A stretch of DNA of 64,000 nucleotides, taken from the NCBI GenBank assembly GCA_977016875.1, contig CDRNST010000103.1:1178001-1242000 (forward strand), in the 5' to 3' direction. Position numbers and translations under genes: made by a program. Below, piece after piece: positions 58,635-63,513 of the stretch. Below the pieces are notes generated by a model. That model was not told the origin of the DNA. It saw nothing but the letters and a program-made list of their open reading frames with translations, and ran no database searches. The stretch is from Pavona decussata (lineage: Eukaryota). Position 1 is the first letter of the stretch. Each line of letters starts with the position of its first letter.

Positions 58635-59264
58635 ATGCATTGGGCCTTTGTACGGTTAGCTATTTGTCTACTGATTGGGTCGGAGGTTTGCCTCGTTCAT
58701 AGTAGTTCGAGTCAGGAGAACGGTTTGCATCAACACAGACTAAACCAACATGTCCGTGAAGTTAGGGCACGTCGTGAACGCCGGTCCCTAACCCAATCTG
58801 ATCTGAAATGCGACCCAAGTGAGACAAAATGTACATACGTGACAGCCCTGTTGGACTTTCCTCCCTACGTAATGAACAGCACAAAAAGAGGATTTCTCTT
58901 TGAAAAAATCATTTGGTTTGTGGAGACAGTATGCTTGGGCATGGAGTCGGCTGATGATCCACCAACTTGTTGTATGGAGCCCAGGTTTGTTAAAGATGCA
59001 GATGACATGCTTGCGTTAATTAAGAACAGAACAGTGGATCTTGCTTTCCCTATCCAAGCGGACGTGAAGGATAAGCTCAAAGACCTTCCCTATGTGACCT
59101 TCATCCGGGCATTTGTGTCAAAGGGATGCTCCCTTATCGTGAACACAAAACAATGTGAGGCGGAGTCACGGGAACAGTTACTGACTTCCATTACGTCACA
59201 GTGGCCAATACTGGCTTGTATCATATTACTGTCGGGAATTTCAGGAGTTGTTATTTGGGTGCTG
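58635..59264 (+). CDS. GluR0-like ligand-gated K+ channel, coding exon 1 (signal peptide, RARRERR pro-site, S1 lobe, M1)
   Basis: Acceptor atttgttatag ends 58551; ATG 58635 (MHWAFVRLAICLLIG...); DFPPYV and VDLAFP binding-protein-like motifs; TM WPILACIILLSGISGVVIWVL; donor CTG|gtaagc, phase 0. Confidence 0.85.
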
Positions 59265-59349
59265 GTAAGCTGATGAAGAATATCGATAGAATTGGACTGA
59301 CATATTTACTGTTTAAGAGCCTACTATTAAAGAAGTATTTTTGTGTGGT

Positions 59350-59704
59350 TGACTATGTGGAGAAAGCGTATCTCAGCAAGGGCTATTACGATCCAAAAAG
59401 AAAATTGGGGGTAACCACGCATTTTTTAGAGACAATTAAACAACAATTATTCTAAAAAGCAGTAAAATACAAAGCAATGTATGGCGTTTTTTCCAAATTA
59501 AAACTTTATTATTTCTGAAAAATGCATGGCTACGACCAATTTTCTTTTTGGATACCAAGAGCACTTGCTAAGTTCTGCCTTTTCTGCATAATTTTAAACC
59601 GCGAAAAAATATCCCTTTGTTAGAGGGCACTACCCATAGGAAAATCGAGTATCTCGAGATGCGCAGAACGTATGCGCTGTAGCAAAAGTAGGCACCGTCC
59701 TTAA
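59350..59704 (-). mobile_element. Family C, copy 2 (channel intron)
   Basis: Ends gagatgcgcagaacgtatgcgc...ggcaccgtccTTAA. Confidence 0.65.
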
Positions 59705-59858
59705 CAAAGCCTTTTGGTTGAAAGTCTTCCTTTAATCTGTGCTTATTTACTATAATAACCTGTTATAATCAGGCTTTCCCCCTCCTCCACTCAGGAAGAC
59801 TTGATAAATAAACTCAGGGGTTAAGTTGTTACGGTTGAGCTGACGTGCCATCAAACTG

Positions 59859-60031
59859 AGGCCATTTCCGAGTTGCTTTGAACCTCATTATGAAAGCGAG
59901 GCTAAGTGCAAAGTTTTTGTCATGAAAATTAGTTTTCATTCATATGCAAACAAAACTAATCTTCATACGAAAAGTTAAGCACTTAGCCTCGCTTTCATAG
60001 TGAGGTTCACAGCAACTCGGAAATGGCCTAT
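59859..60031. mobile_element. Palindromic MITE family B, copy 2 (channel intron, opposite orientation)
   Basis: Close reverse-complement match to 31638-31814. Confidence 0.8.
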
Positions 60032-60671
60032 TCTGCGCATCTCCATTGTTTAGAGGGAAGCACCATTGCAATGTCCTGTCACTGTTCAAAGTTAAGCTTT
60101 GTTTACGATTTAATTCAGTATACTTGCCCCGTCCATCCTTTCTTTGAATTCTTTTCGTTTTCTTTATTTGGGAGAGAATAGGCCTTTCACAATGGCATTA
60201 CAGTCTTCAATAAAACATGAAGGCATTTCTCCATAATTCAGGGAAATTATATGTACTTTGGCTAGATTTTTCCAGGCCTGTTGGTATACCACTATCCTTC
60301 AACTCCACCCCCTCCCCCCAGGCCTACCCTGCTTAATGGCCCTGCATGTTAAATGTTCAACAACAGGGAATACCATCACTGTTCCCGCCAATTTATGTTC
60401 CTCGTATATTCCTTTCAAGTAATGCCCTGTAAAAGGCTTTTAACCGAAGGAAACTATACATCCCTCAGCAGACAATTTAGGGATGTTATTATTCTGAACT
60501 CCTTTACAGATATGGGGTTGGGGTTTGGGCGGAAAAGCAGGGGTTTAAAGCTGGGGTTTTAGAGGGCAAGTTTCTATCGCCCAGGAGACGCAATTTCGAA
60601 CAGAAATGGGGTGGTACTTACTTAGAGGGGTATTACTCAATACATTTGCATGATGATTATTTTCATTACAG

Positions 60672-60766
60672 GAGCATAGAGGAAACAAAAATCAGTTCTC
60701 GTCTTCGTTTACTTCCGGCTCTCCTGAGGGCTTCTGGTGGGCAGTGGTATCGCTTACAACAGTCGG
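60672..60766 (+). CDS. GluR0-like channel exon 2 (pore helix and first half of selectivity filter)
   Basis: tttcattacag|GAG...GTC GG|gtaaat; translates [32 protein letters not shown]. Too short for the ORF track. Confidence 0.9.
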
Positions 60767-61757
60767 GTAAATATACTTGACATTTGATTGGAAAGGTCAT
60801 GGTATGCAGTTTACATATGAATGATAAGTAGCCCTGTCACGGAAAACATCTGTGGTTGTACAGTGTCTCTTTTAATTTTCGTTTTGGTATTACAATCCTC
60901 CTCCTTCTCCTCCACACCAATGTCAATCTTTTGGCGGCTATTGGTTAACAGAATATATGATTTATCAACTCAGTTTATTCGTTTCCACACCCCCACTGAT
61001 TCAAAAAATGCAGAAAAGACTATTTCCATACTTCTGGGAATTTTAAGTTCATATTGTTTTGTTTCAATCATCTTCAGTAGCGCACACCTCCCCACCCCCC
61101 CCCCCCCCGCGCCATTAGAAGGGCATTTGATCTCGCTGTAATTCTCGAGATGGGGTATTCAAATTTTATCGCAGCTCGGGGGTCGGGCATTTGCCTTCCT
61201 TGAGGCATTTTTCACCCTCGTGGGTTTTGGCAGAGAAAGCATAGGTGGTTTCAACTGAAGGTTTGGTAGCAAAGACAAATGAACAAGAGTTTGTGGCTAA
61301 ATCGCTAACCTATATAAGGTTACCAAAGTTGTTTTTTTTTTTTTTAAAGGTACCTTTTGTTATGTTACCTTATCTTTAAATTTTCATTGCGGACAAAATA
61401 ATAAGCCAAATTAACTATCGTGTCTGGAAATTGTCTGCATCATCTGAATGCATTATTAAAAGTGACACCACATGTCCGTGTACATGGCGTTTTTTTTAAA
61501 GCAATGATTGGCGGTGTTGGTCTCTTGATGAACCCTTGGATCAGGGAGGCATTTGCCTTCTTCTTTGGTCACACCCTGGGGTCGGTCACTGCTGAAAATG
61601 ACTGATTCATTAGTTAAAATTTGGTCGGGCACCAACCAATTCCCAATTCGGGCGTCTGCTATTTCCTTAAAATTGAAGTAAGCATTTAAATAATGCTTTT
61701 TCTTCTTCTTCATGTGATGGTTTTACAGTGTCTTGTATCTTTTATTTTTCGTATCAG

Positions 61758-61917
61758 ATACGGTGACAAGACTCCAAAGACCTTTCTAGGGCGTATGTTT
61801 GGAATAATCTGGATCCTCGTGGGAGCAATCATGCTGTCTTTATTTACTGCTTTGTTTACAAATGCCATGCAGGCCGCTCTTGATGGCACAAAATGCCAAG
61901 AAATTGATTCTAAAGAT
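61758..61917 (+). CDS. GluR0-like channel exon 3 (YGD, inner helix)
   Basis: tttttcgtatcag|A TAC GGT GAC...AAA GAT|gtgagt; [53 protein letters not shown]. Phase matches exon 2 (GG+A = Gly). Confidence 0.9.
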
Positions 61918-61930
61918 GTGAGTGGGTGAT

Positions 61931-62727
61931 AATACAGTAGAGGACAGTACAACACAATACAATACAAGACAATACAGTACAGTGTAATGCAATGCAATGC
62001 AACGCAGTGCAGTACAGTACAGTACAACACAACACAATACAATACAGTACAGTGTAATGCAATGCAATGCAACGCAGTGCAGTACAGTACAGTATAGTAC
62101 AGTACAACACAATACAATACAATACAGTACAGTGTAATGCAATGCAATGCAACGCAGTGCAGTACAGTACAGTACAACACAACACAATACAATACAGTAC
62201 AGTGTAATGCAATGCAATGCAACGCAGTGCAGTACAGTACAGTATAGTACAGTACAACACAATACAATACAATACAGTACAGTGTAATGCAATGCAATGC
62301 AACGCAGTGCTGTACAGTACAGTATAGTACAGTACAACACAATACAATACAATACAGTACAGTGTAATGCAATGCAATGCAATGCAACGCAGTGCAGTAC
62401 AGTACAGTATAGTACAGTACAATACAATACAATTCAATACAGTACAGCACAACACAGTACAATACAATTCAATACAATACAATACAATACAATACAGTAT
62501 AATGCAATACAATACATTACAGTGTAATGCAATGCAGTACAGTACAGTACAATACAATACAATTCAATACAGTACAGTACAGTACAGTACAATAAAATTC
62601 AATACAGTACAGTACAGTGCAATGCAATGCAATACAATACAACACAGTGCAGTATAGTACAGTACAATGCAATGCAATGCAAAGCAATACAATTCAGTAC
62701 AGTACACGTACCATGCAATGCAATATA
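61931..62727. repeat. Compound pentanucleotide satellite (TACAG/TACAA/TGCAA) filling the intron after channel exon 3
   Basis: Directly visible; source of the Cys/Tyr-rich pseudo-ORFs. Confidence 0.95.
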
Positions 62728-62765
62728 AACCTGTGCAGTAAAGTAAGAAGATTGCTATTTTTTAG

Positions 62766-62832
62766 GTGGGAGTGTCGATCAGGAATACTGAGGCACAACT
62801 TGTTGCAAAACAATACGATGCAAATATTATTA
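62766..62832 (+). CDS. GluR0-like channel exon 4 (start of S2)
   Basis: ctatttttttag-type acceptor ending 62765; VGVSIRNTEAQLVAKQYDANII; donor A|gtaagt, phase 1. Confidence 0.8.
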
Positions 62833-63145
62833 GTAAGTAACTGTTTATTTATTTATTTCTTTTCATTTGTCAAAATGTACCATTTTTAATTCAATTCAGG
62901 CATTTATCCTTTTATATACCATTCATTTTTGGCAGAAACAGTAGAAACACTGCATCTCTTTTCTATACTTCAGCTCCTGAAATCCTTACCCTTCTATATA
63001 CCTGAAGCCTGAAAAAGGTACCCCTTTCCGCTTAAATATAGAAAATTCGTTTATGGAATACTCCATGTTTTCGAAAAAAAATTAATCAGTTTAGGCTCAA
63101 GAAGTGTTCGTTAGCCAGTAACGTAAATAAACGTTGAATTCACAG

Positions 63146-63513
63146 AATTTGACAGCATTGCAGAAATGCAAAAGCAGCTTAGCAGTGGGGTTATTGGAAG
63201 AGTGCTTGTGGATCGAAACACAGCATTTCACTTCCTGGACAAATCAGGCTTGAAACGGAACCGACAAATTCGTTTGATACGATACATAGACTACCCTTTG
63301 GACTATTACATGGTTCATGTACGTAGAGAATCCGAAGATTTGGATAAGCCGTCAGTGCAACTCAATCTCAATGAAACAGAAGACATGGGATTGGACGGAG
63401 ATCCTAAAGAAAAAGTTGCGGCTTGCGGGCCTATGTTGAAGGACCTATCTGCGGATTTAGTTGGAGCCTCCAAACAGAGTGCACAAGATCAGCTTATACC
63501 CGCGGGATTACAG
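63146..63513 (+). CDS. GluR0-like channel exon 5 (S2 lobe); gene probably continues beyond gap/window
   Basis: ttcacag|AA TTT GAC...; (K)FDSIAEMQKQLSSGVIGRVLVDRNTAFHFL...IPAGLQ|gtaagg. In frame with exon 4; no stop before the donor. Confidence 0.8.

Follow-up and report, generated by a model that had tools for sequence, protein, structure and literature searches.

Can an animal gene encode a potassium channel whose pore is set inside a binding domain of the glutamate-receptor type? The links usually cited between K+ channels and glutamate receptors are only two: GluR0 in bacteria and AvGluR1 in one rotifer. The question is raised by a gene of the coral Pavona decussata that lies towards the end of a 64,000-nucleotide (nt) stretch of contig CDRNST010000103.1 (contig positions 1,178,001-1,242,000; this whole stretch is hereafter the window, and positions are given in its numbering). 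An initial annotation of this DNA had joined exons between 58635 and 63513 into a GluR0-like ligand-gated potassium channel. We put at roughly 70% the probability that the locus is a single-copy, expressed coral gene for a GluR0-like subunit of about 591 amino acids (aa), most likely forming a tetrameric, inhibitory K+ channel gated by an extracellular ligand. The predicted subunit consists, in order, of a signal peptide, the first half of a binding clamshell (S1), a transmembrane (TM) helix (M1), a re-entrant pore loop carrying TTVGYGD, a second TM helix (M2), the second clamshell half (S2), a third TM helix and a coiled-coil tail.

Gene structure and transcripts

Direct reading of the sequence placed five coding exons of the gene inside the window, all on the + strand and all bounded by AG and GT, with four GT-AG introns between them. 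These exons, their boundaries and the absence of a frameshift were exactly as first annotated. Coding exon 1 (58635-59264) ends CTG/GTAAG. Coding exon 2 (60672-60766; AG at 60670-71, ending GG/GTAAAT) encodes the M1-pore linker EHRGNKNQF, the pore helix and TTVG, while coding exon 3 (61758-61917; AG at 61756-57, ending GAT/GTGAGT) encodes YGD, the M2 helix (equivalent to M3 of ionotropic glutamate receptors, iGluRs) and the S2 linker. The selectivity filter is consequently split by intron 2 as TTVG/YGD (60756-60766 plus 61758-61767), the codon of the first filter Gly being interrupted. Coding exon 4 (62766-62832; AG at 62764-65, ending A/GTAAGT) holds the start of S2, VGVSIRNTEAQLVAKQYDANII. 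The rest of S2 is encoded by coding exon 5 (63146-63513; AG at 63144-45, ending CAG/GTAAGG), which includes IGRVLVDRNTAF with a nearly invariant Asp and also encodes a variable acidic loop and a helix leading towards the third TM segment. Exon lengths and phases are compatible: 630, 95 + 160 and 67 + 368 nt give 210 + 85 + 145 = 440 codons, free of stops.

The frame is open at 63513, and the gene is therefore incomplete within the window. Searches with orthologues (tblastn), followed by reading of the sequence, located two further coding exons of the contig shortly past the window: coding exon 6 at window-equivalent positions 64157-64328, encoding the third TM helix (EMEGLFSTGSTMTSLILFWLLGVFLSLLLLGILWEFF), and coding exon 7 at 65198-65481 including the TAA, encoding a charged helical tail (MQNFVEMEERLRDLTADIQKMKEEF). 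Thus the 440-aa product first proposed survives as 440 stop-free codons but is not the whole protein, which is predicted at about 591 aa with the two additional exons. At the other end, the untranslated part of the first coding exon spans 58552..58634 (+), with its acceptor AG at 58550-51, and transcript contigs fit the window from 58552. An in-frame TGA (58569-71) lies upstream of the start ATG at 58635 with no ATG between the two. The transcript contigs carry 25-181 extra upstream letters lying off the window, which implies at least one additional upstream exon of the 5' untranslated region (UTR). The complete gene comprises seven coding exons, with six GT-AG introns between them and one before the first, on a 1.32-Mb animal contig. 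Across the 602-Mb assembly, a near-identical match to exon 1 occurs once.

Four public runs from four studies each supplied one contig (2085, 3589, 974 and 1499 nt) joining all five exons. The contigs join exactly 59264/60672, 60766/61758, 61917/62766 and 62832/63146, the four junctions of the initial annotation, with intron sequence absent. When the run contigs were placed on 58400-63524, their segments were 58552-59263, 60671-60765, 61757-61917, 62766-62832 and 63146-63513; they extend up to 2 kb past 63513. As they lack introns, the contigs derive from processed transcripts, and because exon 1 has only one near-identical genomic locus, a retrocopy was not their source. Agreement of four runs on identical junctions cannot be due to chance.

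The coding variants listed between the four runs comprised 16 synonymous and 13 non-synonymous changes, compared with 22.5% synonymous expected by chance (binomial p = 1.4e-4); 13 further between-run differences stand outside the variants listed. Among those listed, non-synonymous changes concentrate in the signal peptide, the N-terminal linker and the variable acidic S2 loop, the two pore exons have synonymous changes only, and codons 64-210 (the S1 core) have six synonymous and two non-synonymous changes. One run contains an in-frame 12-nt deletion, located in the variable S2 loop. The reading frame is intact and under constraint.

Subunit layout and pore

A signal peptide, MHWAFVRLAICLLIGSEVCLVHS, is predicted at approximately residues 1-23 (58635..58703, +) from a hydrophobic N-terminus that follows a basic residue and precedes a Ser-rich polar stretch. 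S1 begins about 40 residues past it, and an amino-terminal domain is absent. The S1 half of the clamshell (approximately residues 59-185; 58809..59189, +) contains DFPPYV and VDLAFPIQ, matches by profile the S1 of bacterial GluR0-type proteins and corresponds to lobe 1 of the GluR0 structure 1iiw in models of orthologues; it has seven Cys and two N-glycosylation sequons. Helix M1, WPILACIILLSGISGVVIWVL, occupies the end of coding exon 1 (59193..59264, +). It was assigned by hydropathy and is a predicted helix with confidence (pLDDT) above 90 in the orthologue models, and its residues W, P, G and W are invariant across 66 cnidarian relatives. The third TM helix is encoded downstream as MTSLILFWLLGVFLSLLLLGILWEFF, model helices being found at 449-478 and 494-528, and the predicted cytoplasmic tail is a coiled coil about 95-110 aa long.

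The filter reported as intact in the initial annotation recurs in the relatives: T, T, V, G, Y, G and D are each invariant or nearly so in an alignment of 90 sequences. The segment around the filter, through ..GR, is almost letter-for-letter equal to the bacterial GluR0-type consensus. Exon 3 alone matched the Pfam models Ion_trans_2 (E 9.7e-8) and Lig_chan (E 2.7e-4), and orthologues pass the Pfam cut-offs for both. For Lig_chan (PF00060), orthologues P0001 and P0021 scored 33.5 and 40.1 against a cut-off of 30.8, the match covering the pore region only. A sequence profile of the whole family, searched against the PDB, gave a best 60 that were nearly all K+ channels (E down to 7e-14) and included no glutamate receptor. 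The top matches were 6uwm (E 7e-14) and 2a0l (3e-13), both deposited as voltage-gated potassium channels, with Kv1.2 next. M2 recalls the iGluR SYTANLAAFLT motif without keeping SYTANLAA.

Two orthologues depart from the common pattern. P0055, from Montipora capricornis, has the filter TTVGCGD, which is either a real variant or a sequencing or gene-model error. P0001, Acropora palmata isoform X2, is without about 32 residues of S2.

The flanking clamshell

Homology and fold were assessed exon by exon or on natural orthologues. In hhalign, the coral profile matched that of bacterial GluR0-type proteins with a probability of 100% (E 8.9e-47) over 284 colinear columns running through S1, pore and S2. 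Since the pore could carry such a whole-profile score, it was removed and the lobes were compared singly. Coral S1 matched bacterial S1 at 92.8% probability (E 4e-7, 91 columns) and coral S2 matched bacterial S2 at 94.5% (E 8e-8, 76 columns). In the crossed controls, coral S1 against bacterial S2 reached 10.7% (E 0.0029, 26 columns) and coral S2 against bacterial S1 3% (E 0.015, 74 columns). The start of exon 4 aligns with the 'VG.v..s' beginning of bacterial S2.

AlphaFold2 models were made for two orthologues, P0063 from a mixed alignment and P0056 from cnidarian sequences only. Their pLDDT values were 81.8 and 81.1, respectively, both exceeding 90 in S1, the TM domain and S2. The VIA structural scan, which covered 48,161 PDB chains and is independent of Foldseek, placed the ligand-binding domain (LBD) of GluR0, 1iiw_A, at rank 1 for both models: Z 19.3 with a root-mean-square deviation (rmsd) of 2.9 Å over 214 of 221 residues for P0063 (model residues 62-427), and Z 19.1 with an rmsd of 3.2 Å over 215 of 221 residues for P0056 (59-454). 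Both alignments take in the two clamshell halves. Nostoc GluR0 (2pyy) ranked third, with Z 17.7 and 17.4, the top ranks being only about 1 Z unit apart. Further matches at Z 14-18 included BvgS VFT2, amino-acid binding proteins, plant GLR3.4, AvGluR1 (LBD 4io2, Z 15.6-15.7) and the LBDs of animal iGluRs.

Whole-chain comparison with Foldseek listed 50 matches, all of them LBD-TM domain chains of AMPA receptors (GluA1-4; E ~5e-12, ~470 columns), and VIA alignments to 9hpc, 5un1 and 7lzh continue through the third helix. A fold of the flanks as a type-2 periplasmic-binding-protein clamshell had been anticipated in the initial annotation. The best PDB match of both orthologue models and the lobe-wise profile comparisons agree with it and support a clamshell homologous to that of bacterial GluR0.

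Relatives in Cnidaria and bacteria

An HMMER scan of 1.84 billion representative proteins with exon 1 recovered 52 proteins, the best being a 553-aa "uncharacterized protein" of Acropora palmata. Protein database searches did not find a full-length copy of the window protein; among full-length relatives P0056 comes closest, with 65% identity in exon 1. The orthogroup occurs in the stony corals Acropora, Montipora, Pocillopora, Stylophora, Oculina and Desmophyllum. A wider family includes sea anemones (Nematostella, Actinia, Exaiptasia, Actinostola), octocorals (Dendronephthya, Xenia), hydrozoans (Hydra, Hydractinia, Clytia) and the scyphozoan Rhopilema, under the database names "uncharacterized", "predicted protein" or "potassium channel domain-containing". 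The description of a poorly characterised animal family is apt for these relatives across Cnidaria. Among named matches the family is restricted to cnidarians, and the nearest ESM Atlas clusters, of 85, 54 and 154 members, are cnidarian.

The next-best matches (E ~1e-18) were bacterial proteins of 350-400 aa that have the GluR0 architecture of SBP_bac_3, Lig_chan and Ion_trans_2. Proteins of this kind, and not ordinary K+ channels, are the closest relatives beyond the cnidarians. In line with the initial annotation, the coral protein is also set apart from ordinary K+ channel families by its signal peptide, its Cys-rich, glycosylatable N-terminal lobe, its three TM helices and its lack of a voltage sensor.

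A maximum-likelihood tree (LG+G4, short search) was built from 66 cnidarian and 24 bacterial sequences. The cnidarian sequences separate from the sampled bacterial ones with a Shimodaira-Hasegawa-like approximate likelihood ratio test (SH-aLRT) value of 100. The orthogroup of the window gene is a clade whose long stem measures 1.14 changes per column. A slowly evolving subfamily has hydrozoan, scyphozoan, octocoral and hexacoral members, and the family is therefore older than the split of the cnidarian classes.

In the P. decussata genome a homologous first exon occurs at no fewer than 12 loci, each time ending at the same point after M1. At least 11 of these first exons are paralogous (L002-L012), and several are clustered on contigs C143, C123 and C103. 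One paralogue, L007 (G000:C103:379637-383104), keeps the TTVG/YGD exon split. A second member of the family was not found within the 64-kb window.

Some relatives have additional domains. Cnidarian relatives P0191, P0219, P0231, P0232 and P0252, from Dendronephthya, Clytia, Porites, Hydractinia and Stylophora, have N-terminal Ig, CUB, FN3 or thrombospondin-type domains before the channel core. Bacterial relatives of about 700-750 aa (P0088, P0094-P0096 and P0099-P0101, among others) have a ProX-type domain (PF04069) before SBP_bac_3, Lig_chan and Ion_trans_2, a layout of two binding-protein domains before the K+ pore that is reminiscent of the amino-terminal domain plus LBD of iGluRs.

Comparison with known channels and receptors

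GluR0 of Synechocystis PCC 6803 and bacterial GluR0-type proteins have in common with the coral protein the order S1, M1, T.VGYGD pore loop, M2 and S2. In both, the channel splits the clamshell into S1 and S2 and an amino-terminal domain is absent; the motifs WLLE[HR]..N..F and the GFWWA.V....GR region are likewise common to the two. The coral protein departs from GluR0 in its eukaryotic signal peptide, disulfide-type cysteines, glycosylation sequons, third TM helix, cytoplasmic coiled-coil tail and variable acidic S2 loop, and the S1 Arg of the GluR0-type proteins is not conserved in its family. GluR0 itself is without M4 and a carboxy-terminal domain (CTD) (bioRxiv 10.1101/2021.01.27.428399). 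The GluR0 architecture originally assigned to the gene therefore holds for the split S1/S2 around a two-TM K+ pore but falls short of the protein, whose M4-like third helix and coiled-coil tail go beyond GluR0.

Among eukaryotic receptors, AvGluR1 of a rotifer is the one for which retention of the K+ signature is usually cited (PMC12332018; PMC3483616). It is described as an amino-acid-activated receptor with the eukaryotic iGluR architecture (PMC12332018; 10.1101/2021.01.27.428399). Like the coral protein, it is an iGluR-superfamily subunit with a K+ signature in the pore loop and a three-TM layout. Compared with AvGluR1 as described in these publications, the cnidarian family is without an amino-terminal domain and does not conserve the Arg, and in sequence it adjoins the bacterial GluR0-type proteins.

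The whole-chain fold predicted for the coral protein, S1-M1-P-M3-S2-M4 ending in a cytoplasmic tail, is that of animal iGluRs (AMPA, kainate, NMDA, delta, epsilon and lambda). The coral protein differs from them in its K+ filter TTVGYGD, where they have a Q/R/N-site pore, and in the absence of an amino-terminal domain of the ANF_receptor type, for which the orthogroup shows neither a Pfam match nor room. With canonical K+ channels (KvAP, Kv1-4, Shaker, KcsA) the coral protein has the pore helix, filter and inner helix in common. It differs in the opposite membrane orientation that its signal peptide and extracellular S1 would imply, and in that its pore, one per chain, sits inside a binding-protein domain. 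Voltage-sensor, T1, RCK and Kir C-terminal domains were not found by Pfam.

No description of the cnidarian family was found in the literature searched, the coverage of which was incomplete. A 2026 survey of cnidarian iGluRs makes no mention of such channels, a large metazoan iGluR phylogeny (PMC6307864) does not contain the words GluR0, potassium, prokaryote or bacterial, and the placozoan epsilon paper treats GluR0 as bacterial. The sequences are already public with Pfam Lig_chan and Ion_trans_2 marks; their reading as a cnidarian GluR0-like family appears to be new.

Other features of the window

Intron 1 contains two hairpin-like inverted repeats, at 59354-59590 (arms of 86 nt, 76%) and 59859-60029 (78 nt, 87% complementarity). 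Contigs from the RNA runs are thousands deep over these repeats and continue into many unrelated flanks; the repeats look like high-copy elements of the miniature inverted-repeat transposable element (MITE) type that are also present in many transcripts. Intron 3 holds a minisatellite (61933-62725) of about 10 units of 75-80 nt with ACAAT/ACAGT-type pentamers; as a repeat, it was passed over when the run contigs were placed. In intron 5, adjoining a stretch of N (63545-63705), an open frame at 63706-63978 (+) contains FPWMENSPGDVSERVDHFDQNFLCLLNKHAPVK, which we take to resemble the endonuclease-reverse transcriptase interval of non-long terminal repeat (non-LTR) retroelements, as a candidate likeness only. 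Elsewhere in the window, an intronless open reading frame of 424 aa (6100-7374, +) has an alpha/beta-hydrolase fold (Abhydrolase_1, E 1.8e-11; Hydrolase_4, E 2.3e-9) and is unrelated to the channel gene.

Discussion

From the families named above we infer that the channel is a tetramer, that it selects for K+, that an extracellular ligand gates it and that its effect is inhibitory. On this basis, the signal peptide, the S1 cysteines and the sequons would place S1 and S2 outside the cell. With the topology of iGluRs, M1 would run inward, the pore loop would re-enter from the cytoplasmic side, M2 would run outward and the third helix inward, leaving the tail in the cytoplasm; the K+ pore would be inserted upside-down, as it is in GluR0 and iGluRs. 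Four subunits would form the pore, by analogy with these same proteins. Binding of a small ligand outside the cell would shut the clamshell, and the S1-M1 and M2-S2 linkers would pull open the outer helix bundle and its gate. K+ efflux through the intact filter would then hyperpolarise the cell, making the protein an inhibitory ligand-gated K+ channel. A part in chemosensing or host-symbiont signalling, as the initial annotation suggested, is speculative.

Several points weigh against such a channel. The RNA label of the four runs is a guess in their records, and their RNA nature was deduced from the missing introns. The models are not of the window's own product but of orthologues with 55-65% identity to it in exon 1. 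A filter can read TVGYG intact and still not be selective for K+. Pfam matched neither SBP_bac_3 nor Lig_chan-Glu_bd (PF10613) in any exon or orthologue, and the clamshell is therefore highly diverged; the expectation of Ion_trans_2 flanked by SBP_bac_3 was borne out for the pore and failed for the flanks in Pfam, the lobes being recovered by hhalign. The remaining point concerns the binding site. In the GluR0/iGluR superfamily an S1 arginine holds the alpha-carboxylate of the ligand, and in GluR0-type channels an acidic S2 residue serves its alpha-amino group. Most of the 24 bacterial S1 sequences have the arginine, in a 'T..RE' motif. The 66 cnidarian sequences conserve no arginine at this position, and many have an adjacent Lys; the window sequence reads PIQADVKDKL at the site. 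Because the arginine is not conserved, the ligand is probably not bound as in glutamate receptors, and the cleft may bind something unusual, or nothing.

If it binds nothing, the protein would be a K+ channel whose clamshell no longer takes a small ligand and serves instead as a structural or protein-interaction module or as an ion or pH sensor, the channel being a leak or otherwise gated. The lack of conservation of the carboxylate-binding Arg, the unmatched Pfam LBD models and the long stem of the orthogroup all fit this account, and the extra Ig, CUB and FN3 domains of some relatives suggest protein partners. Nevertheless, the cleft looks maintained: the Asp of the S2 motif VLVDR hardly varies, the S2 helix largely retains its N-T-E start, the high-confidence models adopt the closed-cleft shape of GluR0 and the S1 core is constrained. 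We consider a non-binding clamshell unlikely, while granting it real weight. The iGluR-like whole-chain fold and topology, with an equivalent of M4, could also belong to a non-selective cation channel of the iGluR kind or to a silent auxiliary subunit, in spite of the K+ signature; a signature alone is no proof of selectivity, and one orthologue reads TTVGCGD. This we hold to be improbable, given that the pore helix, filter and following residues closely match K+ channels and bacterial GluR0-type proteins and that K+ channels so dominate the best 60 PDB sequence matches, with no glutamate receptor among them. Contamination by bacterial DNA, horizontal transfer in the recent past, a pseudogene and a Kv-type channel of the ordinary kind have hardly any probability. 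Outside Cnidaria the closest relatives are indeed bacterial, and automatic names such as 'Potassium voltage-gated channel subfamily G member 3' occur; but the gene has GT-AG introns within a 1.32-Mb animal contig and spliced transcripts, a paralogue has the TTVG/YGD intron position in common with it, and its frame is intact and constrained. The family moreover spans Anthozoa, Hydrozoa and Scyphozoa, apart from the sampled bacteria at an SH-aLRT of 100, and the protein has three TM helices only and no voltage-sensor domain. These readings were rejected on intron, transcript, constraint, distribution and domain evidence, and that of a retrocopy on the single near-identical locus of exon 1.

For the family as a whole we advance a more tentative proposal than that of a ligand-gated K+ channel at this locus, and one we hold to be less likely than not. 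The cnidarian proteins may be an expanded set of K+-selective inhibitory receptors and living intermediates of iGluR evolution, with a ligand class other than alpha-amino acids. Such intermediates might have started from a GluR0-type clamshell and K+ pore and gained M4 and the tail, while not gaining an amino-terminal domain and keeping K+ selectivity. As an alternative origin, an ancient bacterial transfer into the cnidarian stem could have been followed by an independent gain of the M4-like helix.

Fast ligand-gated inhibition in animals is usually described for chloride channels. If the preferred reading of the coral gene as an inhibitory ligand-gated K+ channel is true, extracellular-ligand-gated K+ channels in nerve-net animals would represent a different route to the inhibition of cells. 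The lack of a conserved arginine would point to an undiscovered ligand, and the cDNA is expressible as it stands. A Cnidaria-wide family with a GluR0-type core, M4 and a tail would make the order of domain gain directly testable.

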